A DNA stretch of 45,565 nt, taken from positions 1,364,001 to 1,409,565 of the forward strand of contig NW_027140453.1 of NCBI RefSeq assembly GCF_036365525.1. The letters are read 5' to 3'. How positions within the stretch are numbered: position 1 is the stretch's first letter; each line of letters opens with the position of its first letter. Of this stretch, positions 3,001 through 31,790 are shown in pieces. The DNA is from Heterodontus francisci (Eukaryota). Both the position numbers and the translations under genes were made by a program. The notes beneath the pieces are model-generated. The model saw only the letters and a list, made by a program, of their open reading frames with translations, ran no database searches and was not told where the DNA came from.

Positions 3001-3135
3001 GGAGGAGGTTACAGAGATAGGGAGGGTTGTAGGGGATGGAGGAGGTTACAGAGTTAGGGAGGGTTGTAGGGGCGGGAGGAGGTTACAGAGTTAGGGAGGG
3101 TTGTAGGGGCTGGAGGAGGTTACAGAGGTAGGGAC
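1..3135. repeat. G-rich minisatellite, ~37-bp unit (AGAGATAGGGAGGGTTGTAGGGGCTGGAGGAGGTTAC), roughly 80+ copies
   Basis: Unit visibly repeated head-to-tail; GTTACAGAG recurs with period 37 (e.g. 2971, 3008). ORF 2616..2891 is a repeat artefact. Confidence 0.95.
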
Positions 3136-3170
3136 GGTTCGCGTGGGGTTGCATTTTGCACTGATCTTAC

Positions 3171-3231
3171 ACTGTTAATCCACTTCCGTTTCCAAAGTAC
3201 ACGTGGTTATAATTTCCCGTATTCACGCCAC
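3171..3231 (-). pseudogene. TRBJ: Degenerate TCR J segment (GVNTGNYNHVYFGNGSGLTV*), probable pseudo-J
   Basis: Minus strand reads ...TAT AAC CAC GTG TAC TTT GGA AAC GGA AGT GGA TTA ACA GT then GTAAGA (FGxG-x-x-LTV motif). Heptamer-like CACATTG at 3232-3238 (+), but the nonamer at 12 bp is poor (GCCTTCAAA). The donor is in phase 2 rather than 1. Confidence 0.6.
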
Positions 3232-3600
3232 CACATTGCTCACGTAAAAGGCCTTCAAACCATTACTCTGTCAGTTATGAGCCGCCTCTGAGACAGAACC
3301 CTCTCTGACCCTCATTGCCCGAGTCCCAGTCCAGAGCTGCAAGCCGATCATCCAGGGCAACACTACCACCAGGACTGAGAGAAAAGGAGACTTAGAACAG
3401 GACTGTGTAGGAAAGCGAGGGAGTGGTAGTTGATTGAACACAAACGAAGGATGGCAAGGAGAGAGGGGGCAAGCAGAGACAAACAACAGGGAAAGGGAAG
3501 AGGGCAAGGAGAGAGAGAGATAAGGATGAGAAATAATGAGGATGAGGAACTTAGTGGCAGAAACTGTGAACGAAAGAGAAATAAAGTGAGTTCACACAAG

Positions 3601-6175
3601 ATTTACTACAGGCCTCCCAACAGCGAGCGTGAGATAGAGGTACAAATATGTAAACAGATTATGGAAAGATGTAGGAGCAACAGGGTGGTGGTGATAGGAG
3701 ATTTTAATTTTCCCAACATTGACTGGGATTCGCTTAGTGTTAGAGGTCCAGATGGAGCAGAATTTGTAAGGAGCATCCAGGAGGGTTTTCTAGAGCAGTA
3801 TGTAAATAGTCCAACTCGGGAAGGGGCCAGACTGGACCTGGTGTTGGGGAATGAGCCCGGCCAGGTTGTTGAAGTTTCAGTAGGGGACTACTTTGGGAAT
3901 AGTGATCACAATTCCGTAAGCTTTAAAATACTCATGGACAAAGACGAGAGTGGTCCAAAAGGGAGAGTGCTAAATTGGGGGAAGGCCAACTACACCAAAA
4001 TTCGGCAGGAGCTGGGAAATGTAGATTGGGAGCAGCTGTTTGAAGGTAAATCCACATGTGATATGTGGGAGGCTTTTAAAGAGAGGTTGATTAGCGTGCA
4101 GGAGAGACATGTTCCTGTGAAAATGAGGGATAGAAATGGCAAGATTAGGGAACCATGGATGACAGGTGAAATTGTGAGACTAGCTAAGAGGAAAAAGGAA
4201 GCATACATAAGGTCTAGGCGGCTGATGAAAGACGAAGCTTTGAAAGAATATCGGGAATGTAGGACCAATCTGAAACGAGGAATTAAGAGGGCTAAAAGGG
4301 GTCATGAAATATCTTTAGCAAACAGGGTTAAGGAAAATCCCAAAGCCTTTTATTCATATATAAGGAGAAAGAGGGTAACTAGAGAAAGGATTGGCCCACT
4401 AAAGGACAAAGGAGGAAAGTTATGCGTGGAGTCAGAGAAAATGGGTGAGATTCTAAACGAGTACTTTGCATCGGTATTCACCGAGGAGAGGGACATGACG
4501 GATGTTGAGGTTAGGAACAGATGTTTGATTACTCTAGGTCAAGTCGGCATAAGGAGGGAGGAAGTGTTGGGTATTCTAAAGGGCATTAAGGTGGACAAGT
4601 CCCCAGGTCCGGATGGGATCTATCCCAGGTTACTGAGGGAAGCGAGAGAGGAAATAGCTGGGGCCTTAACAGATATCTTTGCAGCATCCTTAAACACGGG
4701 TGAGGTCCCGGAGGACTGGAGAATTGCTAATGTTGTCCCCTTGTTTAAGAAGGGTAGCAGGGATAATCCAGGTAATTATAGACCGGTGAGCCTGACGTCA
4801 GTGGTAGGGAAGCTGCTGGAGAAGATACTGAGGGATAGGATCTATTCCCATCTGGAAGAAAATGGGCTCATCAGTGATAGGCAACATGGTTTTGTGCAGG
4901 GAAGGTCATGTCTTACCAACTTAATAGAATTCTTTGAGGAAGTGACAAAGTTGATTGATGAGGGAAGGGCTGTCGATGTCATATACATGGACTTCAGTAA
5001 GGCGTTTGATAAGGTTCCCCATGGCAGGCTGATGGAGAAAGTGAAGGCGCTTGGGGTCCAAGGTGTACTAGCTAGATGGATAAAGAACTGGCTGGGCAAC
5101 AGGAGACAGAGAGTAGCAGTAGAAGGGAGTTTCTCAAAATGGAGACGTGTGACCAGTGGTGTTCCACAGGGATCCGTGCTGGGACCACTGTTGTTTGTGA
5201 TATACATTAATGATTTGGAGGAAAGTATAGGTGGACTGATTAGCAAATTTGCAGACGACACTAAGATTGGTGGAGTAGCAGATAGTGAAGGGGACTGTCA
5301 GAGAATACAGCAGAATATAGATAGATTGGAGGCTTGGGCAGAGAAATGGCAGATGGAGTTCAATCAGGGCAAATGCGAGGTGATGCATTTTGGAAGATCC
5401 AATTCAAGAGTGAACTATACAGTAAATGGAAAAGTCCTGGGCAAAATTGATGTCCAGAGAGATTTGGGTGTTCAGGTCCACTGTTCCCTGAAGGTGGCAA
5501 CGCAGGTAAATAGAGTGGTCAAGAAGGCATACGGCATGCTTTCCTTCATCGGACGGGGCATTGAGTACACGAGTTGGCAGGTCATGTTACAGTTGTATAG
5601 GACTTTGGTTCGGCCACATTTGGAATACTGCGTACAGTTCTGGTCGCCACATTATCAAAAGGATGTGGATGCTTTGGAGAGGGTGCAGAGGAGGTTCACC
5701 AGGATGTTGCCTGGTATGGAGGGCGCTAGCTATGAAGAGAGGTTGAGCAGATTAGGATTATTTTCATTAGAAAGACGGAGGTTGAGGGGGGACCTGATTG
5801 AGGTGTACAAAATCATGAGAGGTATAGACAGGGTGGATAGCAAGAGGCTTTTTCCCAGAGTGGGGGTTTCAATTACTAGAGGACACGAGTTCAAAGTGAA
5901 AGGGGAAAAGTTTAGGGGGGATATGCGTGGAAAGTTCTTTACGCAGAGGGTGGTGGGCACCTGGAACGCATTGCCAGCGGAGGTGGTAGATGCGGGCACG
6001 ATGGAGTCTTTTAAGATGTATCTAGACAGATACATGAATAGGCAGGAAGAAAAGAGATACAGAACCTTAGAAAATAGGCGACATGTTTAGAGAGAGGATC
6101 TGGATCGGCGCAGGCTTGGAGGGCCGAAGGGCCTGTTCCTGTGCTGTAATTATCTTTGTTCTTTCTTTGTTCTAT
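3601..6175 (+). mobile_element. CR1-clade LINE, 5'-truncated; ORF2 (C-terminal AP endonuclease + reverse transcriptase) open to 6090
   Basis: YYRPPN, GDFNFP, SDHN endonuclease motifs; RT motifs YMDFSKAFDKV, GVPQGSVLGP, FADD; CR1 3'UTR GGGCCGAAGGGCCTGTT and short-repeat tail. The N-terminus of ORF 3430..3600 is flanking read-through. Confidence 0.95.
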
Positions 6176-6179
6176 GACA

Positions 6180-6530
6180 CCAAGGATGAGAGACTTCAGT
6201 TAATGTGGAGAGACTGGAGGAGCTGGGATTGTTCTCCTGAAGAGACGGTTCAGGGGAGATTTAACAGAGACGTTTGCAATCGGTCATGGTTTTGACAGAG
6301 TAAATGAGGCGAAACTGTTTCCCGTGACACAAAGCAGCGAGCTGTTGTGATGTGGAATGCACTGCCTGAAAGGGCGGTGGGATTGACTCAGAGTATTACA
6401 AAGAGAATTGGGTCAACAGCTGAAGGGAGGAATTGCAGGTCTATAGCGATAGGGTGGGAGGGAACTGGGATCAATCAGACAGCTGTAGAAAAGAGCCAAC
6501 CCTGGCACCATGGTCAATGGTCCAGAACTG
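6180..6530 (+). mobile_element. Old degenerate CR1 3' fragment
   Basis: GAGAGACTGGAGGAGCTGGGATTGTTCTCC and TGGAATGCACTGCCTGA match the CR1 ORF2 C-terminus (ERL..LGLFS, WNALP). Confidence 0.65.
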
Positions 6531-6534
6531 TATT

Positions 6535-7620
6535 GCTCTCTCTGACTGAATCTCTCTCTCTCTCTCTCTCTACCTGAATCTCTCTCTCCTTTTCTCTCTC
6601 AATCTCTATAAATCTCTCCCTCGCGGATTCTCTCCCTCTCTCCCTGAATCTCTCCCTCTCTCTCTGAATCGGTCCCACTCTCTCTCTCTGAATCTCTCCC
6701 CCTCTCTCTCTTGGGTTCTCTCCCTCTCTCCCTGAATCTCTCCCTCTCTCTCTGAATTGCTCTCTCTCTGACTGAATCTCTCGCCCTCTCTCTGCCTGAA
6801 TCTCTCTCTCCTTTAGTCTCTCAATCTCTGTAAATCTCTGTCTCTCTTGGGTTCTCTCCCTCTCTCCCTGAATCTCTCCCGCTCTCTCTGAATTGCTCTC
6901 TCTCTCTCTCTAAATCTCTCTCTCTCTCTGTCTGAAACCCCCCCACTCTGAATCGCTCCCACTCTCTCTCTTTCTGCCTCTCTCTCTCTGAATTGCTCTC
7001 TCTCTCTCTCTCTTTAAATCTCTCTCTCTCTCTGAAACACCCCCCACCCTCTGAATCGCTCCCACTCTCTTTCACTCTGCCTCTCTCTCTCTGAATTGCT
7101 CTCTCTCTCTCTAAGTCTCTCTCTCTCTCTCTCTGAAACACACCCCTTCCCTCTGAATCACTCCCACACCCTCTCTCTCTCTCTGCCTCTCTCTCTCTCT
7201 GAATATCTCCCCCTCTCTCGAAATCACACTCTCTCTTTCTGAAAAAAATTCTCTCTCTCTGCCTCTCATTCTCTCTCGGAGTGTTTCTCTCTCAATGTGT
7301 GATTCTCTCTCTCTGTTTATCTCACTGGCTTTCTGTCTGCCTCTCTACTGCCTGCAGTCTCTCTCTCTCTCTCTCTCTCTGTTACTGTTTATTTTTTCTC
7401 TCCGTTTCTTTCTCTCTCTCTCTCTCTTCCCTCTCTCTTTCTCTCTGTTTCTTTCCATCTATCTCTGTGTCATCACTCTCTCTGTGTTTCTTTCCCTCTC
7501 TCTCTGTTGCTTTCCCTCTCTTTCTGCATCTTTCTCTCTCTCTGGTTCCATTTTTTGCTCGCCATTTTTTCTATCTCACATTTTTCTCTGCTTATTTCCT
7601 TTTCTGTTTATTTCCCCCTC
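6535..7620. repeat. CT-rich microsatellite/low-complexity tract
   Basis: (CT)n with recurring CTGAAT units; ORFs here are S/L or R/E artefacts. Confidence 0.9.
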
Positions 7621-7777
7621 TCTGCACCAAAGAGACACAATGATCAAATGGCCTCTTCCAACACAATAATAAGATTCCATCTGGTCAGACACGGTAAACT
7701 CAGAGATGTTATTGTGCGTACCGGCTCCTTTTGCCCCCCAACTCAACCTCCAGCACCTGGACTCGAGCATTACTTAC

Positions 7778-7826
7778 CCAGTACGGTGAGTCGGGTCCTA
7801 CCTCCGAAGGTAGCTGGATCGTTCAC
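7778..7826 (-). CDS. TRBJ: TCR beta-type J segment (VNDPATFGGRTRLTVLG)
   Basis: 49-nt segment GTG AAC GAT CCA GCT ACC TTC GGA GGT AGG ACC CGA CTC ACC GTA CTG G followed by a perfect phase-1 donor GTAAGT (7777-7772); preceded by a 12-RSS. Confidence 0.88.
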
Positions 7827-7854
7827 CACAGAGAGTGAACCCACCATTGAAACC
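7827..7854 (+). other. 12-RSS of J: CACAGAG-12 bp-ATTGAAACC
   Basis: Heptamer 7827-7833, spacer 7834-7845 (12 nt), nonamer 7846-7854, abutting the J coding end. Confidence 0.8.
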
Positions 7855-8056: not shown

Positions 8057-8137
8057 AGTTCTTGCACGGGGTGAGCACAGGAATGTAACACGGTGCTATA
8101 CTGACCTCCCACGATGTTACTAAGCAGTTCAATAAAA
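8057..8137 (-). other. TRBD: Candidate D segment (coding 8096-8109, GGAGGTCAGTATAG) with 5' 12-RSS and 3' 23-RSS
   Basis: 3' RSS on minus: CACCGTG (8095-8089), 23 nt, GCAAGAACT (8065-8057), nearly identical to the GCAAGAACC nonamer of the V at 31850. 5' RSS on plus: CACGATG (8110-8116), 12 nt, TCAATAAAA (8129-8137, weak). Lies ~270 bp upstream of J with TRB-type 12/23 geometry. Confidence 0.65.
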
Positions 8138-8329
8138 CCTCTCCCCCCCCCCCCCTCTCTCTCTCATTTTTCTGTCCCTTTATCTCTCACTTCAAATTTC
8201 CCTTTTAATCACGTGTCCTTCCCTTTTCAGAGTTATTATCCCATTGGAAGTCTCCTGTTTCCATAAACACTTTCTCTCCTCCATATTCTAATCTTCTTCT
8301 CCCTGTATAAGTCTCTCGACAAGTCTTTC

Positions 8330-11005
8330 TCTCTCTGTGACTCCATTCCTGTCTCTGTCTGTCTTTCTCTCTCTCTCTATCTCTCCCTGTCCCTCTGNNN
8401 NNNNNNNNNNNNNNNNNNNNNNNNNNNNNNNNNNNNNNNNNNNNNNNNNNNNNNNNNNNNNNNNNNNNNNNNNNNNNNNNNNNNNNNNNNNNNNNNNNNN
8501 NNNNNNNNNNNNNNNNNNNNNNNNNNNNNNNNNNNNNNNNNNNNNNNNNNTCTCTTTCTGTCTTGGTCTGTCTGTCTGTCTCCCTCTCTCTCTGTGTCTC
8601 TCAATCTCTTTGTCTTGATCTCTGTTTTGCTTCTTCCATTTATTCATTTTCTCCCTTTCTCTCTCTTTATCTTTGCCTGTCTCTGATGTTCTTCCTTTTC
8701 TCTCTCAGCATCACATCTCTCACTGTCTCTCGTTCTCTGCCTCTCTTTGTCTCTTTCTGTCTCTCCCAGTCTCTCCATCTCTGTCTCACTATTTCACTCT
8801 GTCTCTCTTACTGTGTCTAAAACTAAAAATTGGCTAGCTGAAAGAAGACAGAGGGTGGTGGTTGATGGCAAATGTTCATCCTGGAGTTTAGTTACTAGTG
8901 GTGTACCGCAAGGTTCTGTTTTGGGGCCACTGCTGTTTGTCATTTTTATAAACGACCTGGATGAGGGTGTAGAAGGGTGGGTTAGTAAATTTGCGGATGA
9001 CACGAAGGTCGGTGGAGTTGTGGATAGTGTCGAAGGGTGTTGTAGGGTACAGAGGGACATAGATAGGCTGCAGAGCTGGGCTGAGAGATGGCAAATGGAG
9101 TTTAATGCGGAGAAGTGTGAGGTGATTCACTTTGGAAGGAGTAACAGCAATGCAGAGTACTGGGCTAATGGGAAGATTCTTGGTAGTGTAGATGAGCAGA
9201 GAGATCTTGGTATCCAGGTACATAAATCCCTGAAAGTTGCTACCCAGGTTAATAGGGCTGTTAAGAAGGCATATGGTGTGTTAGCCTTTATTAGTAGGGG
9301 GATCGAGTTTCAGAGCCACGGGGTCATGATGCAGCTGTACAAAACTCTGGTGAGGCCGCACCTGGAGTATTGCGTGCAGTTCTGGTCACCGCATTATAGG
9401 AAGGATGTCGAAGCTTTGGAAAGGGTGCAGAGGAGATTTACTAGGATGTTGCCTGGTATGGAAGGAAGGTCTTACGAGGAAAGGCTGAGGGACTTGGGGT
9501 TGTTTTCGTTAGAGAGAAGGAGGAGGAGAGGTGACTTAATAGAGACATACAAGATAATCAGAGGGTTAGATAGGGTGGATAGTGAGAGTCTTTTTCCTCG
9601 GATGAGGATGGCAAACACGAGGGGACATAGCTTTAAGTTGAGGGGTGAAAGATATAGGACAGATGTCAGAGGTAGTTTCTTTACGCAGAGAGTAGTAGGG
9701 GCGTGGAACGCCCTGCCTGCAACAGTAGTAGACTCGCCAACTTTAAGGGCATTTAAGTGGTCATTGGATAGACATATGGATGTAAATGGAATAGTGTAGG
9801 TCAGATGATCGGCGCAACATCGAGGGCCGAAGGGCCTGTACTGCGCTGTAATATTCTAATCTAATCTAATCACACTATATCTCTGTCTATCTGTCTCTGA
9901 CTGTCTGTCTGTCTCTCTCTGTCTGGCTGTCTGTCTGTCTCTCCCTCTGTCTCTCTGTTTGCCTGTCTCTCTTTCTCCCTCTCCATCTGTCTGTCTGCCT
10001 CTCTCTCTCTCTCTCTCTGTCCCTGTCCCTCCCTCTGCTTCTTTGTCTTGTTCTCTGTTTACCTTTACTCCTTCTCTCCCTTTCTCTCTCTCTCTATCTT
10101 TGCCTGTCTCTGACGTTCTTCTTTCTTCTCTCTGCCTCTCACTCTCTCACTGTCTCTGTCTGCCTCTCTCTCTGTCTCTCTCTTTCGCTCTGTCTCTCCA
10201 TCTGTCTCACTACCTCACTCCGTCTCTCTTTCTCGGCCTCACGCTATTTCACTCGATCTCTGTCTGCTGTCTCTCTCGGTCTCTCTCTCGGTCTCTCCCT
10301 GTCTCTCTCTCTCTGACTCTCTCTGCCTCTTTGTCTTGTTCTCTGTATCCTTCCTCCCTTTACTCTTTCTCTCCCTTTCTCTCACTCTATCTTTGCCTGT
10401 CTCTGACGTTCTTTTTTCTCCTCTCTGCCTCTTCGACTCTCACTGTCTCTGTCTGCCACTCTCTCCGCCTCTCCCTCTCTCTGTATCTCTGTCTCTCTCC
10501 GCCTATCTGTCTCTCTNNNNNNNNNNNNNNNNNNNNNNNNNNNNNNNNNNNNNNNNNNNNNNNNNNNNNNNNNNNNNNNNNNNNNNNNNNNNNNNNNNNN
10601 NNNNNNNNNNNNNNNNNNNNNNNNNNNNNNNNNNNNNNNNNNNNNNNNNNNNNNNNNNNNNNNNNNNNNNNNNNNNNNNNNNNNNNNNNNNNNNNNNNNN
10701 NNNNNNNNNNNNNNNNNNNNGCCACTCTCTGTCTCTCTGCCCCATCTCTCTTTCTGACTCTCTGTCTTGTTGTATTCCTCCTTACCTTTACTCTTTCTCT
10801 CCCTTTCTCTCTCTCTATCTCGGCCTGTCTCTGACGTTCTTCCTTCTCCTCTCTGCCTCTCACTCTCTCACTGTCTCTGTCTGCCTCGCTCTCTGTTTCT
10901 TTCTTTCTCCCTGTCTCTCCATCTGTCGCACTACCTCAACGGTTTCTCTTTCTGTGCCTGACACAATCTCACTCTATCTCTGTCTACTGTCTCGCTCTGT
11001 CTATC

Positions 11006-11036
<31 letters not shown>

Positions 11037-12640
11037 ACCTCTCTCTCTCTGTCTCTCTCTCCCTCTGTCTCTCTGTCTGCCCCCCCCTCTCTCTTTCTTT
11101 TCTCTCTCTTCGCCCCTGTCTCTCTCTGTCTCTTTGTCTTGTTCTCGGTTTCCCTTCCTTCCTTTACTCTTTCTCTCCTTTCTCTCTCTCTATCGTTGCC
11201 TGTCTCTGACATTCTAACTTCTCTCTGCCTCTCACTCTCTCACTGTCTCTGTCTGCCTCTCTCTCTGTTTCTTTCTTTCTCTCTGTCTCTCCATCTGTCG
11301 CACTACCTCAACTGTTTCTCTTTCTGAGCCTGACACAATCTCACTCTATCTCTGTCTACNNNNNNNNNNNNNNNNNNNNNNNNNNNNNNNNNNNNNNNNN
11401 NNNNNNNNNNNNNNNNNNNNNNNNNNNNNNNNNNNNNNNNNNNNNNNNNNNNNNNNNNNNNNNNNNNNNNNNNNNNNNNNNNNNNNNNNNNNNTCTCTGT
11501 CTCTTTGTCTTGTTCTCAGTTTCCCTTCCTTCCTTTACTCTTTCGCTCCTTTCTCTCTCTGTATCTTTGCCTGTCTCTGACATTCTAACTTATCTCTGCC
11601 TCTCACTCTCTCACTGTCTCTGTCTGCCTCTCTCTCTGTTTCTCTCTTTGTCTCTATCTCTCCATCTGTCTCACTACCTCATCTGTCTCCCTTTCTGTGC
11701 CTAACACTATTTCACTCGGTCTCTGTCTACTGTCTTTCTCTGTCTCTCCCTCCATCTGTCTCTCTGTTTGTCTCTCTCTCTCTCTCTTCCTTTCACTCTC
11801 GCTCTGTCCCTCTCTCTCTCTGCCTCTTTGTCTTGTTCTATGTTTTCCTTCCGCCCTTTACTCTTTCCCTCCTTTTCCTCCTCTTTCTTTGCCTGTCTCT
11901 GACGTTCTTCTTTTTTCTCACTCTGGCTATCAGCCTCTCACTGTCTCTGTCTCTCTCTTTCTCTCTGTCTCTCCATCTGTCTCATTACCTCACTCTGTCT
12001 CTCCTTCTGTGCCTAATACTATCTCACTCTATCTCTGTCTACTTTCTCTCTTTGTCTACTTTCTCTNNNNNNNNNNNNNNNNNNNNNNNNNNNNNNNNNN
12101 NNNNNNNNNNNNNNNNNNNNNNNNNNNNNNNNNNNNNNNNNNNNNNNNNNNNNNNNNNNNNNNNNNNNNNNNNNNNNNNNNNNNNNNNNNNNNNNTCCAT
12201 CTCTGTCTCTCTGCCTCACTCTGTCTCTCTTTTTCAAACGCTATATTACTCGAACTCCGTCTATCTGTCTCTCTCTCTGTCGATGTGGGTCTCTGTCTCT
12301 GTGTTTCTCTCTATATATGTCTCTTTCTCTGCCTTTCTCTCTCTCAGTCTCTCTCTCTTTGTCTCCATCTCTCTCTCTCAGTCTCTCGCAGTCACTCCAT
12401 CTCTGTCTCTCTGCCTCACTCTGTCTCTGTTTTTCAAACGCTATATTACTCGATCTCCATCTATCTGTCTCTCTCTCTGTCTCTGTGGGTCTTTGTCTCT
12501 ATGTTCCGCTCTCTATGTATCTCTTTCTCCGCCTTTCTCTCTCTCTGTCTCTCTATCTCTCCCTGTCTCCCTCTATCTCTCTATCTATCCCTCCCCTCCC
12601 CACCCTATCACAGACTGTCTCTTTTGCATTTCTTCACGCT
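8330..12640. repeat. CT-rich low-complexity region with internal duplications and four N-gaps, interrupted by a CR1 insertion
   Basis: (CT/GTCT)n; gaps at ~8398-8550, 10517-10720, 11360-11493, 12067-12195. Confidence 0.9.
8825..9871 (+). mobile_element. CR1 LINE, 5'-truncated RT C-terminal half with (CTAAT)n tail
   Basis: NWLAERRQRVVVDG..GVPQGSVLGP..FADD to the stop at 9799; very similar to 30490-31520. Confidence 0.95.
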
Positions 12641-12779
12641 CAAACATCCATTTAAGTTGCTCAAAACGCTTCTCATGTTTGCCGGTTCTGATGTGAAGTG
12701 GTAGCTCTCTTTTACTCTCTGCAGATCCTGCCTGATGCACTGAGGATTTCTAACATTTCATGTTCTTGTTGCTGAAATG

Positions 12780-13070
12780 CCATCTACTGCTGCCGCCTGT
12801 TGGTGGGCAATGACAGCTGCACCTCCATCTACTGCTGCTCCCTGTTGGTGGGCAGAGAGCTGCACCTCCGTCTACTGCTGCCCTCTGTTGGTAGACAAAG
12901 AGAGCTGCACCTCCAGCTACTGCTGCCCCCTTTTGGTGGGCAATACGAGCTGAACCTCCATCTACTGCTGCCCCCTGTTGGTGGGCAATGCGAGCTGAAC
13001 CTCCATCCACTGCTGCCTCCTGTTGGTGGGCAATGACAGCTGCACCTCCAGCAACTGCTCCCCCTAATTG
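12780..13070 (-). promoter_or_regulatory. Tandem array of ~6.5 x 45-bp units, each with a CTCF-like motif
   Basis: Minus-strand cores CCAACAGGCGGCAG, CCAACAGGGAGCAG, CCAACAGAGGGCAG, CCAAAAGGGGGCAG, CCAACAGGGGGCAG, CCAACAGGAGGCAG vs consensus CCASYAGRKGGCRS. The repeat is certain; CTCF binding is inferred. Confidence 0.7.
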
Positions 13071-13144
13071 CGGGAAACGGGTACTGCGAAAAGATAAATG
13101 TTGATTGTCAACACAAACAGTTCCGTGGGAAAAAGATCCCTTAC

Positions 13145-13181
13145 ATTGAAATAATGCTATCAGATTCAGTAACAGATACAT
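13145..13181 (-). pseudogene. Orphan V leader exon (MYLLLNLIALFQ) with intact donor but no V exon
   Basis: 37-nt exon homologous to the other leaders (MYLLLTLITLFH), donor GTAAGG at 13144; followed by the 45-bp array instead of a V exon. Confidence 0.8.
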
Positions 13182-13566
13182 CTTCTACTGGAAGCTGTGT
13201 TTGTAATCTGTAAATCAGTGGAAACAAGAGCTTTGAGTCCTGTGAGAAGCTACATGAAGACTGAAGTAAGTGATTTGGTTTTCACAACTCCTACCTCCCT
13301 GATTGGAAGCCACGTCCCTGTCTCTCTGTTTGGCTGCAAGTATAAGTTGTTGTTGCGTTTGTTGCTATTAGTCTCCTGCTGAAGTTGTTGCTGCATTTGT
13401 TGCTGGTAGTCTCCAGCTGAAGTTGTTGCATTTTTTGGTGCTAGTCACCTGCTGAAGTTGCTGCTGCATTTGTTGGTGTTTTTTCCTCAAGTTGTTATTG
13501 TATTCGATGGTGTTAATCTTTCTCTCTCCCTCTGTCTTTCTCTGTCCGTCTCTCCATTTCTCTCTC

Positions 13567-13798
13567 ATGTCCCTTTAAGATCTTAGGATGCTAATGAGCT
13601 AAATTCCAGCACGTAGTCACGTGACTCGTAGCCAGTGTCACTCTGTAACTGGAACACCTACAGGCAGGTCCTGTAAATAGTTAGTTCAGTACTGTGTATG
13701 ATAGTTCAGCTGTAAATAGACTTGTTTGTGATCTTCAACCAACTGGACTCCACGCTTCTCATTTATGTTGCATCACACAACATTATGAACTCACAACA
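13567..13798. mobile_element. Possible solo LTR
   Basis: ~230-bp segment starting TGTCCCTTTAAG and ending ACAACA (TG...CA). No TSD confirmed. Confidence 0.3.
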
Positions 13799-13799
13799 C

Positions 13800-14460
13800 T
13801 AACAGCTAATATGCAGGTGCAGCAAGCAATTCCGAAGGCGAATGGTATGCTGGCCTTCATTGCAATGGGATTTCAGTACAGGGGTAAAAATGTCTTGTTG
13901 CAATTGTATAGAACCTTGATGCGACTGCACCTCTCGTATTGTGTGCAGTTTTGCTCTCCTTATCGAAGGAAGGATATACTTGCCAAAGAGAGAATGCAGC
14001 AGAGATTCACCAAAATAATCCCTGGCTGGGTGGGTTTGTCTGAGGAAGAGCGATTACAGAAACTGGGTCTGTATTCTCTGGAGTTCCAAAGAATAAGAGG
14101 TGATCGCATTGAAACTTACAAAATTCTGACAAGACATGACACGACAAATGTCGATAGCGTGTTCAGTCTGGAATCAGGATACACTGTCTCCGAATAAGGT
14201 GCAGGCCATTGAAGAGTGAGATGAGGAGGAATTTCTTTAACTAAGAGAGTTGTGAATCTTTGGAATTCTCTACCAAAGATGTCTTTGTGAGCTGACTGCA
14301 TTGAGCATGTTCGAGACAGAAAGCGATAGATTTCTAGATACTAATGACATCAAGGGAGATGGGGATAGTGGGGGGAAATGACTCAGAGGTAGGTGATCAG
14401 CCATGAGTCGGTTCGATGTGCCGAATGGCCTACTCCTTCTCCTATTCCCTATGTTCCTAG
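13800..14460 (+). mobile_element. Degenerate CR1 3' fragment
   Basis: KANGMLAFI..LYRTL.R.HL.YCVQF..LGLYSLE..RGD.IETYKIL, plus 3'UTR GCCGAATGGCCTACTCCT. Confidence 0.85.
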
Positions 14461-14799
14461 GTTGTGTCCTGAATAAGCAGGGGGCAGGCTGTTGTCTGTT
14501 TGACGGTCCTAGAGCGCTCTCTGCTGTCCCTGTGGAGAATGAAGATAGTGTCAGGAGATGAAACCTAAATATTTTTAGTGATCATTCCTTCCTGATATTT
14601 ACATCTTCTCAATTTGGGTCACATCCCCGTTAATCATTCATAGACAGACAGAAGGTTTTAGGGAACATAAGCAGGCTATTAGTGACATCTTTACCAGTGC
14701 CTCTATATTTATTCTCTCACTTTTATTCACACGGGTCCCTTCTTATTGTCACAAACACCATCGCCCTGCACAAAAATCAAGTCTCTGTACAGCGCAACT

Positions 14800-15040
14800 T
14801 TATCTCCCACAGGTAGTGGTGGGACTCTGGAGGACAATCTGTGAGTTCACATCTGGGAAAGAGATGGGTCGAAAATGACGCCAGGACACTCTGGATTATC
14901 GAGGAAGAAGGATGGAAGGGAGGAATGAAAGCGTCAAGGAGAGAAGGAAATTATAAAGTAAAGAAAATTATTAAGCAGCATTATGTTTCATAAAGTTCCT
15001 TATGGTGGGAGATGGTCATCAGACCCAGTAACAGATACAT
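14800..15040 (-). pseudogene. TRBV: TRBV relic: leader with dead donor; V body and RSS deleted
   Basis: Leader 15004-15040 (MYLLLGLMTISH) with donor ATAAGG; exon starts at 14852, DVNSQIVLQSPTT fused directly to post-RSS ACCTGTGG; 3' flank matches that of the V at 43192. Confidence 0.85.
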
Positions 15041-15279
15041 CTTTCACTGGACCTTTCCCTATTCATCAAGTCATCTTGACAAACCATTGAGGAAAGCAAG
15101 GTGGTGAGGGGCGTTTGGTCACGCCCCCTTCTCTCATTCAACCAATCGGAATTAGCATGGTTTAAATTCGCAATTGCTCTTTTTGTATTTGCCAATCAGA
15201 AACGCGGATCTCCACATCTGGATTTCCCAATTGGATACAAGAGCCTGAGCGAAACTGTCACATGTGGATGGCTCTTCAG

Positions 15280-16090
15280 ATGTAACAGGCTCGATGGGGC
15301 TGAATGGCCTCACCCATTTCCTATTTAACAGATTCGAGGGGCTGAATGGGCCTCCTCCTGTACCTGTGCAGACTGAGGGGGGAACTGAATTGGCCTCCTC
15401 TTGCTCCTGTGCAACAGGCTCAAAGGGGCTGAATGGCTTACTCCTGTTCATATTAATCGGCTCAAGGGGGACTAAGTACCCTTCTCCAATTCCTACTAAC
15501 AAGCTCTACATTGATCAATAACCTCCTCCTGTTTGTGCGCAATGAGGCAGGGGAGTAATTGGCCTCCTCATGTTCCTTTGTAAGAGGCTCCAAAAGACTG
15601 AGAGACCTCCTCCTGAATTCTTCATAAACAGTTTTCCAGGCAGTTGTGTGTTACTGGTCCTATAGGGCCCTCTTCTTGGAGAAATTCGCTGTGATGCATT
15701 TTGGCTGAAGGGATAGACAAAGGCAATATAGACTAAAAGGCAGATTTCGAAAGAGTTTGCAAGGAACAGTGGACCTGAGGCTGCATGTGCCTCGATCTTT
15801 GAAGGTGGCAGGGCATGTTGAGAGAGTGGTTAGTAAAGCAGATGGGATCCTGATCTTCATAAATGGAGGTATTGAGTCCAAAAGCAGTGAACCTTTATAA
15901 AGCTCTGGTTAGGCTCCAGCTGGAGTATTGCGTCCAGTTCTGGCCACCACACTTAAGGGAGAATGTGAGGCTCCTTATTAGGGTGCAGAGCATATTTACG
16001 AGATTTGCAGAATGATCTCCTCCTGTTTCTATGCAACGGGACAAAGGGGCTGAATGGCCTACTCCTCTTCCTTTGTTCCTAACAAAGAGA
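15280..16090 (+). mobile_element. Degenerate tandem repeats of a CR1-tail-like unit (GGGGCTGAATGGCCTCCTCCTG) flanking a CR1 fragment (~15680-16010)
   Basis: Repeated GGGGCTGAATGG..CTCCTG units; CR1-like LEYCVQFW coding at ~15920-15945. Confidence 0.7.
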
Positions 16091-16435
16091 GTTGTGTGTT
16101 TGATCATCTGAGTGAAAGAAGACACCGTGTTAGTGGATAAAACCCCAATCGTTTTTCTGATATTCTCTCCTGATAGTGAAAACCTCTCAGTGTGGTGCCA
16201 CCCTTCTTAATCTTTCATAGAAAGATAGAAAGCTTATCAGCACAGAAAGAGGCCAGACTCTTCGCCTCTGCACCTGTGCTCTCAATTTTATTCTCACCCG
16301 TCTATTCTTATTGTCAAAAATATGATAGCCCTGCATCAATTCAAGTGGAAATACCGCGCTATTGTATGTCCAACAGGTGTTTCCTGCTGCCTTTGGGGTT
16401 TTTGTTGAACTGCTCCATCTCTCTGAGTCACTGTG

Positions 16436-16889
16436 AAGACTCCAGGCACAGAAATACACGGCCGAGTGATTCTCCCGCAGGCTGGAGGACTCCAGGTTGA
16501 ACTGGGTGCCAGTCGGTCTCTCGGCAGTGAAACCGTCCACCTCCTTCTCTGGATTTTTGTGATTAGTACCCGTGGAGTAAAACATAACCTGAGGCTCCTT
16601 CCTCGGGTATTGTCTGTACCAGAACATGTTAAGGGTACTGCTCCCCTCCAAAGTGCACTTCAGTTCCACTTCCTCCCCCACAACTCTGGAGACAGAGGCA
16701 GGAGTCTGGAGGATAGTCTGCGAGTTCACACCTGGGAGAGAGTGGGGAAGAGGAAGAGGTCAGTAAACAGGGGATTTCTAGGAAATGAAAGGAAGAGGGA
16801 ATGAGTATAGGAAGGTTATTAGAGAAAACGTTGGTATTTCAGACTCACTCACAGTGCAAAAGGATTATCAGAGCCAATGACTGATACAT
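16436..16889 (-). CDS. TRBV: TCR beta V gene segment (TRBV30-like), intact: leader 16853-16889, V exon 16436-16731
   Basis: MYQSLALIILLH-C-VNSQTILQTP..LKC..WYRQ..YFCAWS; GTGAGT donor and CAG acceptor; perfect 23-RSS CACAGTG (16435-16429)-23-ACAAAAACC (16405-16397). Confidence 0.93.
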
Positions 16890-16964
16890 CTTCCCCTTGA
16901 AGCTGTTTAGAAATAAGCAAAGCAGCGAGAACCGGAGTGTAAGCCTTGTGAGGGTCCAAACCTG

Positions 16965-17060
16965 CTCTTTACAAATCATTGAGGAAAATATGAAGAGCAT
17001 GAGGAAGTGATGCAGTGTTGGACACGCCCCCTTCCAACACCCAACCAATCAGAATGGACG
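16965..17060 (-). promoter_or_regulatory. V promoter module conserved upstream of most V genes
   Basis: On +: TTTACAAATCATTG (minus TGTAAA; TATAAA in the copy near 41865), AGGAAGTGATGCA (ETS core), CACGCCC, CCAATCA. Related modules at ~26740, 34810, 36460, 38090, 40360, 41865, 43745. Confidence 0.65.
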
Positions 17061-17539
17061 TGGTTCCTTGTTATGGTTGAGTGACTGGATTAAGTGTTGT
17101 TAATATCCCCAACAAGGATGTATGTTGTTCAGTTTCTAATTTACTGATGAGAAATCTCCAATTGAACATATCCAGATCCCCAACGAACCTCATCGGCATT
17201 CCCACATTAGCCACGTGTAGATTTCCAATTTATAGACATCTGGATTCCAGTTTATCCACACCTTCATCTCCGAATAGCCAGATGTCGATGCCGTGTGTCT
17301 CCTGGCAAACGTTGTAAGCAACAGTGGCCTGAGGCAAATAGGTGCAATGCCACCTGTGTGGCACTGGGCTCCTTACCTATTCTACAGCAGGGCTATGCAC
17401 ATTACTGGGTCCTTGGCAAGTTTAAATTGCACTGGGTGTGCCTGTGCCTGAACCCATGTAACCTGGGCATCAGCCTAGGCCTCTGGCTTATTATCGCAGT
17501 GACATTGCAACTATGCCATCGTTATCCTTAGACCAGGGC

Positions 17540-19490
17540 GGTTGAAGAGACATTTACCAGAATGGTGCCATGGTTGAGAGACGGTTGTTATGTGGAGAGA
17601 CTGGAGAAGCTGGGACAGTTTTCCTGGATCAGAGCAAGCTAATGGGACGCTTTAACCCTGGAGGTACAGCCGTTCGATAGAGCAGTTAGGGAGAAATGAT
17701 ATCCCCTGGCAGGAGCTTCGGAAGGTAGAGACTTCACATATAGCATCAGCAAGCAATTGGGAAAGTTAATGTTATGTTAGCCTTTATCGCAAGGGGATTT
17801 GAGTACAGGAGTAATGAAGTCTTGCTTCAATCGTGGAGAACCTTGGTTAGACCACACCTCGAGTACTGTGTGCAGTTTTAGTCCCTTGACCTTCGGAAGG
17901 ATATTATTCCCATGGAACGAGTGCTAAGAAGTTTCACCCGACTTGTTCCAGGGATGGCGGGACTGTCCTATGAAGAGAGATTGGGGAAACTGGGCCTGAA
18001 TGCTCTGGAGTTTCAAAGAATGAAAGGTGATCTCATTGAAACCTACAAAGTCCTTAAAGGGATAGACAGGGTAGATGCAGGCAAGAAGTTTCCTCTGGTT
18101 GAAAGAGAAGGTAAGTCAGACACTAGAGTGTGTAAAATGGGTAAAGTGAAAGTGTTCGATCGGCTGTCTGAACATAAAGTAGATAAAGCACCAGCAGCAG
18201 ATGAGATGTATTCAAGGATACTGAGGGAAGTGAGGGTGGAAATCGCGTTGGCCATAATTTTTCAGTCTTCCTTAGACTCAGGGCTGGTGCCAGATAACTG
18301 GAGAATTTCAAACGTTACACCCTTGTTCAAAAAGGGGGTAAAGATAAGCCCAGCAACTACAGGCCAGTCAGTTTAACTTTGGTGGTGGGGAAACTTCTAG
18401 AAAAAATAATTCGGGACAAAATCAATAGTCACATGGACGAGTTAATTAATGAAAGACAGCATGGATTCCATAAGGGAAAATCATGTTTAACTAACCTGCT
18501 AGAATTTTTTTGAGAAGGCAACAGAGAGGGTTGATGAGGGCAATGCTGTGGATGTGGTATACATGGACTTTCAAAAGGCGTTTGATACAATGCCACACAG
18601 CAAACATGTGAGAAAACTTGTAACTCGTGGAATAAAAGGGACGGTAGCAACATGGCGACGAAATTGGTTTAGTGACAGAAAACAAAGAGCAATGGTTAAT
18701 GGATGGTTTTTCGGGCTGGAGGAAGGTTTGCAGTGGAGTTCCCCAGGGATCAGTATTAGGACCTTTGCTTTTCCTGATATATATTAATGACCTAGACCTC
18801 GGTGTACAGGGCACAATTTCAAAGTTTGCCGATGATACGAAACTTAGAAGCATTGTGAATGATGAGGAGGATAATGTCGAATTTGAAAAGGACATAGACA
18901 TGTTGGTGGAATGGGCAGACAGGTGGCAGATGAGGTTCAATGCAGAGAAATGTGAAGTGATTCATTTTGGTCGGATGAACAATAGAGAATAAAGGGCACA
19001 ACTCGAAAGGGGGTGCAGGAGCACAGGGGCCTAGGTGTATATTTGTTTCAGTCATTAAGAGTGGAAGGACGGGTTGGGACAGTTTTACTTGGAGAAGAGA
19101 AGGCTGAGAGGTGATTTGATGGAGGTTTTCAAAATCATGAGGGATCTGGACAGAGTAGATGGAGAGAAACTTTTCCCACTCGTGAAAGGATCGAGAGGGC
19201 ACAGATTTAAAGTATTTGGTAAGGGAAGCAAAAGTGACATGAGGGAGAACTTTTTCACACAGCGAGTGGTGAAGGTCCAGAATGCACTGCCTGAGAACGT
19301 GGTGGAGGCAGGTTCAATTGAAGCATTCAAGAGCGAATTAGACAGTTATATTGAAAGGAAGGATGTGCAGGGTTATGGGGAGAAGGCAGGGGAGTGGGAC
19401 TGAGGGAATTTCTCTTCCAGAGAGACAGTGCGGGCACGATGGGCCGAATGACCTCCTTCTGCACTGTAACAATTCTGTGATTCTGTGGTT
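17540..19490 (+). mobile_element. Composite of frameshifted CR1 ORF2 fragments
   Basis: NWRISNVTPLFKKG, YMDFQKAFD, GVPQGSVLGP, FADD and FTQRVV motifs broken by stops and frameshifts; CR1 tail ending (ATTCTGTG)n near 19490. Confidence 0.9.
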
Positions 19491-21509
19491 GAGAAGTCTA
19501 GAACCAGGGGGCTCAATTTCACGACCACAGCGAGTAAGTTAAGGCCAATAGTGGAGATGCATTTAAGGGGGAGATTAGATCAGGACATGAGGGAGTAAGG
19601 AATAGAAGGAGGTGCTGATGGGCTGAGATGCAGAGAGATGGGAACAGGATTTTAAACCGTGGTGCGGAGTCAACTCCCCCTTGGCCCCTTTATTCCCTTC
19701 ACCCACTTGATTCTGGCTGTCACGTGGGACTAAGTCCTCTTAATTCAGACTCAGGCTGGGTGTTTGGGATATTGGGGTTACAGGAGAGCCACCCTCCACC
19801 TAATCCACCAGTTACGGTTAATGGCTTAGTACAAAGAGGAGGAAACTCAGTCCTTTCTTTAACTATCAAGTTACTTTATTCACGTTGTTGTACAATGGAA
19901 GAATAAGGCTTATACACTTGGTTAGACAAAAGCATGCAACTCAACTGGGTTATACAGTTAATAACAAAGCTAGCTAGAATTGATAAGCACACCCACCAGG
20001 TTCCTCTGACCTTTCCCTGACCTCGTCACAGAAAACAAACGATAATTCCCGGAAAGGGAAGAGCTGATGCTGGCCAGACGTTCTGATCTCTCTCTCTTTT
20101 ACGTCATCACCGCGTTGCTCACGCAGGGTCTTCCACTTCCACAATGGTTGGTCTCTGAAGTTTCTCGCTGGTTCTATGCCTGAGATTCTCCATACTTATT
20201 CTCTTTCTTATCTCTTCAAAACTGTGCTGTCTCTTTCCTGTTGGTTTAGGCCTGCTCACCTCGTTCGTATCTTCTCCTTATTGGCCCAGGCCCAAAGACC
20301 CCGGTATCACACCGTTTCCAAATAAGGCTCTATTCCTGTGATTTCTCCCTTGTCTGTCACATAAATTAATTAGTTCAAACTGGTTTTTACCAGCACAGGC
20401 CAGTGTCTGAGCTCAGGTTACTTTAGTTCATGTGCTATCCAGCAGTTTGTAACAGATTCTGTACTTCTTGCAGCCCATGGCCAAGGGATGATGTTGTTTA
20501 TTTTGGGTAACTGTTTCGAACAGCCAGACCAGGCTCGATTGATCGAATGACCTTGGTCAGTGCTGTATGATTCTATAACTATCTAAGACGCATCAAGGGG
20601 CTTATTTGTTTTAGGCTGAGAAAGATTTATTTTCCCTGTCTCCTAAACGAGAATTGAAGGGTTAAATTCTTGCCTGGGCCTAACTCCCAGATGCTTTGAA
20701 AGTTCTTCAAAAGACACCGAGTGTCTGAAAGACAAGTTGGTTAATAATTGTCAACAGTTGCTCAAAACCGCCAAATTAGGAATCTGTTCCAGTGAGAGAC
20801 CTATCTGGGGAGTTGTCTCGTATTTGCATTGTATGAATCATCAGGGGCATGTAGAATAGGGAGCTCTGTGCAACTCCTTGTCAGAATCTTCCGTCCATTC
20901 TTTCAACTGTATCATGAACCCATTTACCCTGCCTTGTAATCTGTTCTTAAAATGTAGAGGCTACCTCACGAAAAGAGCCTTATCACGTGGATGGAGCATT
21001 TTAATCATTAATATTGTATTGATATAATCTGAATCGAAGGAGAACAAGAAGATACAACAATATCAACAAAATAGCAAACCATGATATATCACTGATGGAA
21101 CTGCGAGATGTAAACAATGACGTTAGATATATGATAAACAACAGAGGGATGGATATACACTTAGACAGACAAGAGCCAGATAAATCGATCGATGACAAAT
21201 ATATATAGATGACAGAGTAAATAGATAAATAGATAAATAGAGATAAATAGAGATATGTATCGATAGCTGGAGGGATCGATAGAGCAATGGATGGATAGAC
21301 AAATGGAACAATAGAANNNNNNNNNNNNNNNNNNNNNNNNNNNNNNNNNNNNNNNNNNNNNNNNNNNNNNNNNNNNNNNNNNNNNNNNNNNNNNNNNNNN
21401 NNNNNNNNNNNNNNNNNNNNNNNNNNNNNNNNNNNNNNNNNNNNNNATTGAGAGATAGATAGATTGAGAGATAGATAGATAGATAGATCGATCGATATAG
21501 ACCCCAATC

Positions 21510-22870
21510 ATTGACCCACCTCACTGACCCCACTCACTGACCCCACTCACTGACCCCACTCACTGACACCACTCACTGACTCCACTCACTGACCCCACTC
21601 AGTGACCCCACACACTGACCCCACTCACTGACACCACTCACTGACTCCACTCACTGTCCTCTCTCACTGACTCCACTTACTGTCCCCACTCACGGACCCC
21701 ACTCAGTGACCCCACTCAGTGACCCCACTCAGTGACCCCACTCACTGACTCATCTCACTGACCCCACCCACTGACACCACTCACTGACTCCTCTCTTTGA
21801 CCCCAGTCACTGACACCACTGACTGACCCCACTCACTGTCTCCACTCACTGTCCCCACTCACTGACCCCACTGACTGACCCCGCTCACTGACTCCACTCA
21901 CCGACACCACTCACTGACTCCTCTCACTGACCCCACTCACTGAGTCCACTCACTGTCCACACTCACTGACCCCACTTACTGACCTCACTCACTGACTCCA
22001 CTGAGTGACTCCACTCACTGACTCCAGTCACTGACCACACGCACTGACCCCACTCACTAACCCCTGTCACTGACCCCACTCACTGACTACGCTCACTAAC
22101 CCCGCTCACTAACCCCGCTCACTGACTCCACTCACTGTCCCCGCCCACTGACTCCACTCACTGACCTCACTCACTGACTCCACTGAGTGACACCACTCAG
22201 TGACTCCACTCACTGACTCCACTCACTGACCCCACGCACTGACCCCGCTCACTAACCCCGCTCACTGACCCCACTTACTGATCCCACTCACTGACTCCCC
22301 ATTGACCCCGCTCACTAACCCCACTCACTAACCCCGCTCACTGACTCCACTGACTGTCCCCGCTCACTGTCCCCGCACACTGACCCCACTCACTGACCCC
22401 ACTCTTAGCATCCACTTACTGCCTCTGCTCACTGACTCCACTCATGGACTCCACTAACATCCTCCACTCACTGTCCCTGCTCATTAACCCCACTCACTGA
22501 CCTCACTCACTGACTTCAGTGAGTGACACAACTCAGTGACTCCACTCACTGACTCCACTTACTGATCCCACTCACTGACTCCCCACTGACCCTGCTCACT
22601 AACCCCACTCACTGACCCCACTTACTGATCCCACTCACTGACTCCCCACTAACCCCGCTCACTAACCCCGCTCACTAACCCCACTCACTGACTCCACTCA
22701 CAGACTCCACTCACTGCCTCCGCTCACTGACCCCGGTCACTGACCGCACTCACTGACCCCACTCACTGACCCCACTCACTGACCTCACTCACTGACTCAA
22801 CTGAGTGACACCACTCATTGACCCCACTCATAGATTCCACTCACTGACTCCACTCACTGACCCCACTCAA
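21510..22870. repeat. Minisatellite, 13-bp unit CACTGACCCCACT
   Basis: Directly visible degenerate tandem array, preceded by (GATA)n and an N-gap. Confidence 0.95.
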
Positions 22871-23310
22871 TCTCCCAGATCAATCCCTATAATAATCCTT
22901 CATTCTCGAGATCAATCCCTATAATAATCCTTAATTCTCCAGATCAATCCCGATAATAATCCCTCATTCTCCAGATCAATCCCTATAATAATCCTTCATT
23001 CTCCAGATCAATCCCGATAATAATCCCTCATTCTCCAGAGCAATCCCTATAATAATCCTTAATTCTCCAGATCAATCCCAATAATAATCCCTCATTCTCC
23101 AGATCAATCCATATAATAATCCTTCATTCTCCAGATCAATCCCAATAATAATCCCTCATTCTCCAGATCAATCCCTATAATAATCCTTCATTCTCCAGAT
23201 CAATCCCTATAATAATCCCTCATTCTCCAGATCAATCCCTATAATAATCCTTCATTCTCCAGATCAATCCCTAGAATAATCCTTCATTCTCCAGATCAAT
23301 CCCTGTAATA
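22871..23310. repeat. Minisatellite, 32-bp unit CTCCAGATCAATCCCTATAATAATCCTTCATT (~13 copies)
   Basis: Period 32 (e.g. CCAGATCA at 22971 and 23003); highly homogeneous. Confidence 0.95.
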
Positions 23311-23866
23311 TCCCCTTATTGTCTCTATCTCTGTCTCCCTCTCTGTCTCAGTCTCTTTAACTCTGTCTGTCGTTTTTGCTTTCTCTCACTAGATCTCTCT
23401 CTGTCACACACATACACTATCTTCCCTTCTCTAACAAAGTGGGTGTCCTTGTCCTGTTCATGTATATCAAGCTGGATCTGCAGACCTCCCGCTCTTTCCG
23501 TTTTCTCACTAAATCCTTTTCAAAGCCATTGTCCATTCCATGGTCCTGGAACCCCCTCTGCTGTCCCTGTGCAGAAGGTAAACACAGGGTCAGTGCATAA
23601 AAAATCCAGATTATTGTCATTGATTCCGGATAGTTACATTCTGAGATCTCGTGACATCCTTATTCATCGTTCATTGCACCCTCGCCAGTACCTGTAAATC
23701 TAAAATCTCACTACAATATTAACTCAGCTCTTTTTATTGTAATAAACACTTTCACTCTGCAAAAGGGAACAGCAGGTCGAGGCACCGAACGGTTTTACCC
23801 TCCACAGGTGTTTCCTGCTGCCTTTCGGGTTTTTGTTGAATTGCTCCATCTCTCTGAGTCACTGTG

Positions 23867-26043: not shown

Positions 26044-26207
26044 ACTTTCTATTAAATTTCGCCCTGTCTTCTTGTGAAAAACATGTTCCCAATAATAAAA
26101 AAACAACACCCAACAAGACGCAGCACCACCTGGTTTTATCTGAAACAGGTGTTTCCTGCTGCCTTTGGGGTTTTTGTTGAACTGCTCCATCTCTCTGAGT
26201 CACTGTG

Positions 26208-31540: not shown

Positions 31541-31571
31541 TTACTGGGTCCATAACCATCAGGGAGGCTCA

Positions 31572-31790
31572 AATCCACTGCTGCCAACTGCTGGTGGAAA
31601 ATGAGCACTGAGATTCAATCTACTGCTGCCCCCTGCCGGTGGAAGATGAGCACAGCGATTCAATCTACTGTTGCCCCCTGTCGGGGGAAAATGAGGACAG
31701 ACATTCAATCTACTGCTGCCCCTGCTGGTGGAAGATGAACACTGACATTCAATCTACTGCTGCCCCCTGCCGGTGGATGATGAGCACTGA
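31572..31790 (-). promoter_or_regulatory. Tandem array of 5 x 45-bp units with CTCF-like motifs, directly 3' of a V RSS
   Basis: Minus cores CCGGCAGGGGGCAG (x2), CCGACAGGGGGCAA, CCAGCAGTTGGCAG, CCAGCAGGGGCAG; same unit length and core as 12780-13070. Confidence 0.72.

Follow-up and report, generated by a model that had tools for sequence, protein, structure and literature searches.

A 45-bp minisatellite with six CTCF-type cores in one orientation was found in a 45,565-nucleotide window of the Heterodontus francisci genome (the window being the whole stretch of DNA analysed here). As assembled, this repeat, called array 1, lies between the last V remains and the D-like segment of a TCR-beta-like locus, and a sister repeat (array 2) directly follows the RSS of a V segment in the same window. 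The most likely reading, to which we give roughly an even chance, is that array 1 is a V-derived CTCF-type array from an RSS flank, acting as a multi-site scanning barrier ahead of D. We infer CTCF occupancy, cohesin stalling and an effect on recombination at array 1 from the DNA sequence.

In mouse antigen-receptor loci, CTCF sites beside V and between V and D are central to RAG scanning. Cartilaginous fish are the oldest lineage with V(D)J recombination. A preliminary description of array 1 knew of no such element described in cartilaginous fish, and this held in the literature searched, in which we found no paper linking CTCF to the antigen-receptor loci of these animals. If the cores are bound, oriented CTCF-core minisatellites at V RSS flanks and at the V-D junction would make the CTCF-RSS partnership ancient, and they would provide natural alleles for how barrier strength scales with site number. 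If they are unbound, array 1 would be an ordinary minisatellite and a warning against inferring function from motifs.

Repeat structure and CTCF-type cores of array 1

TRF delimited array 1 at 12780-13065 on the minus strand (45 bp, 6.4 copies, 84% matches, score 402), and alignment of the units extended it to about 13080 by a degenerate extra 5' unit. The unit, in the minus-strand reading, is about CCACCAACAGGGGGCAGCAGTAGATGGAGGTGCAGCTCTCATTGC. The matrix used for scoring approximated the JASPAR MA0139.1 counts, so the bit scores are approximate; on this scale, with a maximum of 27 bits, array 1 showed six minus-strand matches of 12.6 to 18.9 bits. The core of unit 1 (13011-13029) scored 15.5 bits, that of unit 2 (12966-12984) 18.9 bits, that of unit 3 (12921-12939) 16.7 bits and that of unit 4 (12876-12894) 18.1 bits. 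The cores of unit 5 (12833-12851) and unit 6 (12788-12806) scored 12.6 and 13.6 bits, respectively, and both carried changes at high-information motif positions; in unit 5, the critical G at PWM position 13 is an A. The per-position p values of the six cores, calculated from the exact score distribution, were 2.5e-7 to 1.2e-5.

These results agree with the preliminary description, which had reported six 45-bp units with CTCF-type cores in the same direction; TRF, the PWM and the core pattern gave the same picture, with all cores on the minus strand. Four units contained the core proposed there, CCAACAGRNGGCAGCA, without a mismatch and two contained it with one, always on the minus strand, with 0.00 occurrences expected from shuffles. 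The CAGCTG E-boxes mentioned for some units were also recovered, in two units of array 1, the remaining units having CAGCTC.

In the whole window, 22 PWM matches of at least 9 bits were observed, compared to 9.7 ± 3.5 under a Markov null. A stricter test with the 15-mer IUPAC consensus CCASYAGRKGGCRSY, allowing at most one mismatch, was passed by seven minus-strand sites and no plus-strand site of the window, compared to 0.32 expected. Of the six array 1 units, units 2 and 4 alone passed it (14/15 positions), and the other four matched at 13/15. An A stands at a consensus C-or-G position in every core, and the 15-mer scan found no perfect consensus match among the cores. Outside the LINE elements, the strong PWM matches were all on the V-sense strand. 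The PWM scan gave no plus-strand match between 5502 and 28282 and no oppositely oriented partner CTCF site in the window. Judged by these motif scores, the array 1 cores are good, uniformly oriented CTCF-type motifs that match the vertebrate CTCF core. The mammalian CTCF motif and its orientation rule extend to the little skate, in which the boundaries of TADs are marked by MA0139.1 matches located within ATAC peaks and biased in orientation as expected (PMC10115646), and lamprey CTCF binds the same two-part motif (PMC5504073). CTCF binding is mispredicted by motif scanning alone, as has been said for Hox clusters (PMC5504073).

The other minisatellites of the window, with units of 37, 39, 32, 33 and 38 bp, showed no PWM match. 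They include a 37-bp satellite of 85 copies at 1-3139 (TRF), which together with LINE sequence occupies positions 1-7700; an array of ~105 short units of 13, 26 or 39 bp at 21500-22869; a 32-bp satellite of 13.8 copies at 22867-23310; and a 33-bp minisatellite of 4.3 copies (95% matches) at 32290-32431, about 150-290 bp upstream of the exon of a divergent V segment. LINE reverse-transcriptase ORFs were located at 3430-6090, 8747-9871, 29059-31545 (plus strand) and 17912-19487 (plus strand). In two copies of one LINE family, a (TCTAA)n-type tail comes after the terminal DxNGIV; a further LINE has (ATTCTGTG)n at its end. The tail of the LINE copy at 29059-31545 stops ~25 bp from array 2.

Three other readings of array 1 and its spacer were rejected. 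No Rfam match to array 1 was obtained at E up to 1, which argues against a structured RNA. Inspection of the spacer by eye suggested an E-box and a YY1-like site; however, only two array 1 units contain CAGCTG, and array 2 has no AGATGG.

V, D and J segments and the sister array

The V, D and J segments are all on the minus strand, as are the array 1 cores. The RSS scan identified seven V segments with a perfect or near-perfect RSS (CACAGTG, a 23-nt spacer and ACAAAAACC), and TCR beta chains were the best single-domain PDB matches of two translated V exons. The J segment at 7778-7854 consists of a coding part (7778-7826, VNDPATFGGRTRLTVL), with a GT donor at 7777, and a 12-RSS with its heptamer at 7827-7833 and its nonamer at 7846-7854; it is of the TRLTVL type and reads FGGRTRLTVL. 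The D-like segment, read by eye at 8096-8109, is flanked by a 3' 23-RSS (8057-8095) and by a 5' RSS composed of a nonamer at 8131-8139, a 14-nt spacer and a heptamer at 8110-8116. The nonamer on the 3' side, GCAAGAACT, resembles that of the divergent V segment, GCAAGAACC. The assignment to a TCR locus made in the preliminary description can be narrowed to a TCR-beta-like locus by the PDB matches of the V exons, the 23-RSS on V, the 12-RSS on J and the TRLTVL-type J. The D-J pair is non-canonical in that the 5' spacer of D has 14 nt and J has FGGR where FGxG is expected. Because of this and because the window contains no C exon, the pair may not be the working recombination centre.

The most D-proximal intact V segment has its exon at about 16436-16729 (ORF) and a perfect 23-RSS at 16397-16435, and array 1 indeed lies, as assembled, between the last V remains and D, as had been proposed. 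The interval from array 1 to D is composed of CT-rich low-complexity DNA, a LINE fragment and four N runs; because of these N runs, the distance of 4.7 kb is uncertain and holds for the assembly only.

Two gutted V genes follow each other at the D-proximal end of the V cluster. The first is a V relic at 14505-15051, in which blastn recognised the leader, the opening ~50 bp of the V exon and also the 3' flank. Its positions 14815-14864 match 43447-43496 and its positions 14505-14814 match 42827-43134, so the homology jumps from 43134 to 43447; compared to the V segment at 43120-43482, about 312 bp are missing, comprising most of the exon and the RSS. The second is an orphan V promoter and leader at 13130-13246, with an ATG at 13181, a leader at 13146-13181 and a GT donor after 13145, and blastn showed this leader to be homologous to the leaders of other V genes. 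Neither a V exon nor an RSS remnant was found between the orphan leader and array 1, by eye or in the RSS scan. Together, the relic and the orphan leader indicate that the D-proximal end of the V cluster is decaying. In a possible RNA run (X5), the contig depth was 77.7 and 26.8 over the bins of the orphan leader and promoter (13104-13271), compared to 2-6 over the array; this signal could mean that the orphan leader is transcribed, or that sequence from other V leaders cross-maps to it at 80% likeness.

A coding repeat was considered as well. Long ORFs cross array 1 on both strands, which is expected because a 45-bp unit corresponds to 15 codons, but the leader frame hits a TAG at 13066-13064. 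The last base of the leader exon is the first of a codon, and after the candidate acceptor this phase reads, in the second part alone, PVSRN and then a stop, so that the TAG falls six codons into the would-be exon after the orphan leader. Array 1 is non-coding.

The decay of the neighbouring V genes bears on the main rival to the scanning barrier, namely that array 1 is a neutral leftover. According to this explanation, it is the surviving flank of a lost V, its copy number drifts by slippage or unequal exchange, and it has no role in V-D insulation; in thymocytes it would be either unbound or bound to no effect, as might follow from a nucleosomal or heterochromatic state amid CT-rich repeats and LINEs. 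We consider this possible but, on balance, doubtful. The orphan leader directly upstream and the gutted V 1.5 kb away speak for it, and the surroundings of low-complexity CT repeats, LINE fragments and assembly gaps, as well as the non-canonical D-J pair, are in keeping with it. However, four of the six cores are still strong, at 15.5 to 18.9 bits, and the consensus core of array 1 has no CpG. Where CTCF binding is blocked, CpG methylation is the usual cause, and this would not apply to a consensus core that lacks CpG.

Array 2 is a sister 45-bp minisatellite of 4.9 units at 31572-31790 on the minus strand (TRF), with five cores of 11.2 to 18.8 bits in the orientation of array 1. It starts about 20-35 bp past the 23-RSS (31811-31849, minus strand; CACAGTG, a 23-nt spacer and GCAAGAACC) of the divergent V segment, the exon of which lies at 31850-32143. 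Immediately past the nonamer comes a degenerate array 2 unit; the distance from the nonamer to the first strong core is 35 bp. A homologous protein search with this divergent V found one relative, scyTo_0012003 of Scyliorhinus torazame, with 60% identity.

Several further CTCF-like sequences lie beside V segments. The motif GGCAGCAGG occurs 5-6 nt after the nonamer in every V of the main family (16388-16396, 23819-23827, 26160-26168, 34224-34232, 35850-35858, 41269-41277 and 43144-43152), where the divergent V has GCAGCGG. This motif is the 3' half of the array core (GGCAGCAG), and it may be the seed from which the arrays grew. A second, single-copy CTCF-like family (GGGACAGCAGAG[G/T/A]GCG.., 11-18 bits) was found on the minus strand, in the orientation of the arrays, at 14512-14530, 25533-25551, 33797-33815, 39385-39403 and 45077-45095. 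Its members are located about 350-620 bp past the 3' end (the RSS where present) of one V subfamily; all five copies are identical over the ~35 bp surrounding the motif, compared to 60-70% likeness in the flanks, and the critical G at PWM position 13 is kept in only two of the five. Weak CTCF-like cores on the plus strand, in the opposite orientation and each with one mismatch to CCAACAGRNGGCAGCA, were found at 34174-34189 (CCAACAGGAAGCAGCA) and 39723-39738 (CCAACAGGACGCAGCA). The former lies 44 bp beyond the RSS belonging to the V at 34233. The latter lies ~10 bp below a V ORF (39749-40048) that had no RSS in the RSS scan.

Copy number and conservation of the repeat unit

The abundance of the unit was examined with four sequencing runs aligned to 12600-15100 at a likeness of at least 80%, including raw reads from another individual (run X8) and contigs (run X1). 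Over array 1, the depth was 0.6-3.7 in X8 (both mates) and 62-215 in X1 (word depth), and over the single-copy stretch at 14532-14783 it was 0.4-4.4 and 80-152, respectively. Over the LINE and repeat block at 13356-14531, the corresponding values were 120-3200 and 9,770-281,000; the neighbouring LINE and repeat sequence was 100-1000 times deeper than array 1. No length variants or joints were found within array 1 in the aligned runs, and the RAD-seq run X9 gave zero reads on it. Because the depth of array 1 equals that of its single-copy flanks, the unit is low-copy at an identity of at least 80%, and a handful of relatives in the genome is possible. A ubiquitous dispersed satellite had been named beforehand as the result that would speak against the proposal; for copies at least 80% alike, the depth is instead that of single-copy flanks. 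The 38-bp minisatellite of 3.6 copies at 13344-13475, just upstream of the orphan promoter, differs from array 1 in this respect and is part of a high-copy dispersed repeat, with depths of about 9,770-20,000 in X1 and about 60-90 per mate in X8 in the bins from 13356.

These depths also bear on the possibility that the unit is a dispersed satellite or transposable element carrying a CTCF-like motif. Array 2 abuts the 3' end of a LINE, the ORF of which ends at 31458 and the tail at about 31545. The mouse SINE B2 carries a CTCF-like motif. Vertebrate transposons are known to spread CTCF sites, as cited for mammals (PMC5504073). However, at a likeness of at least 80%, array 1 had the depth of single-copy flanks in the four runs, next to repeats 100-1000 times deeper, and neither flanking nor terminal inverted repeats were found at array 1. 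In addition, the other copy of the LINE family that abuts array 2 (ORF 8747-9799, tail to 9871) has no array after its tail. The read and contig depth and the lack of terminal inverted repeats thus leave a transposon or satellite origin very improbable, and for copies at least 80% alike we regard it as largely refuted.

The conservation of the motif relative to the spacer depended on the comparison. Within array 1, the 19 motif columns showed 6/114 differences from the consensus and the spacer 11/136 (p = 0.45), and within array 2 the differences were 7/94 and 10/111, respectively (p = 0.80). Between the consensus sequences of arrays 1 and 2, by contrast, the motif was identical at 17/19 positions and the spacer at 16/26 (p = 0.046), and the mean identity over all cross-array unit pairs was 0.84 for the motif versus 0.59 for the spacer. 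For a block consisting of the motif and the adjoining GTAGAT, chosen post hoc, 23/25 positions were shared across the arrays versus 10/20 elsewhere in the unit. The objection that the motif might be no more conserved than the rest of the unit, raised with the original proposal, therefore holds within each array and does not hold between arrays. There is no conservation signal at the short time-scale of repeat homogenisation and a modest one at the longer time-scale; young, homogenised repeats leave little power for the within-array comparison.

For a neutral leftover, these results point both ways. A motif kept no better than the spacer within the array, together with the weakened cores of units 5 and 6, is consistent with drift, but between arrays 1 and 2 the motif block has been retained in preference to the spacer, which favours the scanning barrier.

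The block shared between the arrays could also serve another zinc-finger protein, or a meiotic hotspot that drives expansion of the V cluster, in which case the likeness to CTCF would be incidental. This block runs ~6 nt (GTAGAT) past the 19-nt PWM window, with the post hoc counts given above, no core matches the consensus perfectly, and the gene cluster that contains the arrays is duplicating in tandem, a setting in which unequal exchange occurs often. We nevertheless judge this explanation improbable. The block common to both arrays takes in the full CTCF core and scores highly with the 19-nt matrix, with p values down to 2.5e-7, while the candidates picked by eye, CAGCTG (E-box) and AGATGG (YY1-like), are not conserved. 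Furthermore, the uniform V-sense orientation and the placement next to an RSS repeat the pattern of CTCF sites in the mouse (PMC10293834).

Proposed scanning barrier and comparison with known CTCF systems

In the scanning-barrier reading, arrays 1 and 2 would form a small V-linked family of 45-bp minisatellites, produced by tandem amplification of a CTCF site just past a V RSS. Array 2 would have kept the ancestral position beside the RSS. Array 1 would have lost its V exon and RSS while keeping the promoter and leader, and it would now be the CTCF-type cluster nearest the D-J pair.

Each core of array 1 is forward on the V-sense (minus) strand and points away from the V genes. According to the convergent rule and single-molecule work (PMC10132984, PMC10772921), CTCF has its N-terminus on the side to which its motif points, and one N-terminally facing CTCF blocks ~45% of extrusion encounters, compared to 16% from the C-terminal side (PMC10132984). 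[quoted passage not shown] Cohesin anchored at the D-J recombination centre and reeling in upstream DNA would then meet up to six polar barriers, 45 bp apart, and stall; array 1 would be the first such barrier that it encounters. The predicted outcome is that RAG scanning into the V cluster is slowed, or that array 1 itself is held against the recombination centre.

The spacing of 45 bp is close to the footprint of one CTCF, and full occupancy may therefore be impossible and actual occupancy partial. If each occupied site blocked ~45% of encounters independently, about 97% of passages would be expected to end within six sites. Insulation has been found to improve step by step with two to four copies of one CTCF site (PMC11417384). 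A wider proposal, which we put forward tentatively as a speculation with a low chance of being right in full, is that sharks turned a single RSS-flank CTCF site into minisatellites of variable copy number, which would set cohesin stalling by dosage at each V or at a V-less boundary. In this scenario a decayed V would have given rise, independently, to an IGCR1-like function, with array 1 co-opted as the V-to-D barrier of the TCR-beta locus, and V(D)J scanning guided by CTCF would go back to the base of the jawed vertebrates.

Among known systems, the closest likeness is to V-linked sites. The V-linked CBEs of mouse Igh and Tcrb face the D-J side (PMC10293834, PMC10772921), and CTCF bound at array 1 would, by its motif orientation, do the same. 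The RSS-associated CBEs of mouse proximal VH segments stall extrusion anchored at the recombination centre, so that the V concerned is used more and scanning upstream of it is blocked (PMC10293834; bioRxiv 10.1101/2020.01.01.891473). Such a CBE, of the VH5-2/VH81X type, is located directly past the V RSS in V-sense orientation, and array 2 has exactly that position. Array 1 shares the orientation and the association with V remains but has lost the V exon and RSS, so it no longer adjoins an RSS. Moreover, the mouse VH segments have one site per V in Igh, whereas the shark arrays, known from sequence, have five to six tandem motif sites at 45-bp spacing in a TCR-beta-like locus.

The preliminary description had compared array 1 with IGCR1 and with the super-anchor at the 3' end of Igh, and neither analogy survived in detail, since the divergent pair is absent and placement and orientation differ. 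IGCR1 insulates V from D-J and imposes an order on rearrangement. Like IGCR1, which impedes scanning into the V region in the mouse (PMC10293834), array 1 lies, as assembled, between the most proximal V and the first D. However, IGCR1 consists of two divergent CBEs, the dominant CBE1 of which faces the V genes (PMC10293834), whereas array 1 has at least six sites, all in the V-type orientation of CBE2, and is probably derived from a V flank. The mouse Tcrb elements 5'PC and CBE1, which act as tether or barrier, are located 27 and 3 kb upstream of Dbeta1 (PMC10772921, PMC4291525), and array 1 is likewise upstream of D. They face the V genes and are convergent with the V-linked CBEs (PMC10293834, PMC10772921), whereas array 1 is oriented as the V-linked sites are. 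Array 1 is thus not a convergent partner of the V-linked sites.

The CBE cluster at the 3' end of mouse Igh is made up of separate elements over kilobases rather than a 45-bp minisatellite. Its ten consecutive CBEs have the same orientation in series (PMC10293834), and array 1 is similarly serial. [quoted passage not shown] Another known tandem repeat with CTCF sites is the DXZ4/Dxz4 macrosatellite, whose units each contain an oriented CTCF site, with long-range contacts dictated by the direction of the sites (PMC5899087, PMC3491370). The units of array 1 each hold a core in the same way, but they are 45 bp long, whereas those of DXZ4/Dxz4 are kilobases long, X-linked and without a link to V(D)J recombination. 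The V-type orientation of array 1 agrees with the orphan leader beside it. Since all of its cores are oriented as V-linked sites are, array 1 looks like a V-type CBE cluster without its V rather than a dedicated boundary element.
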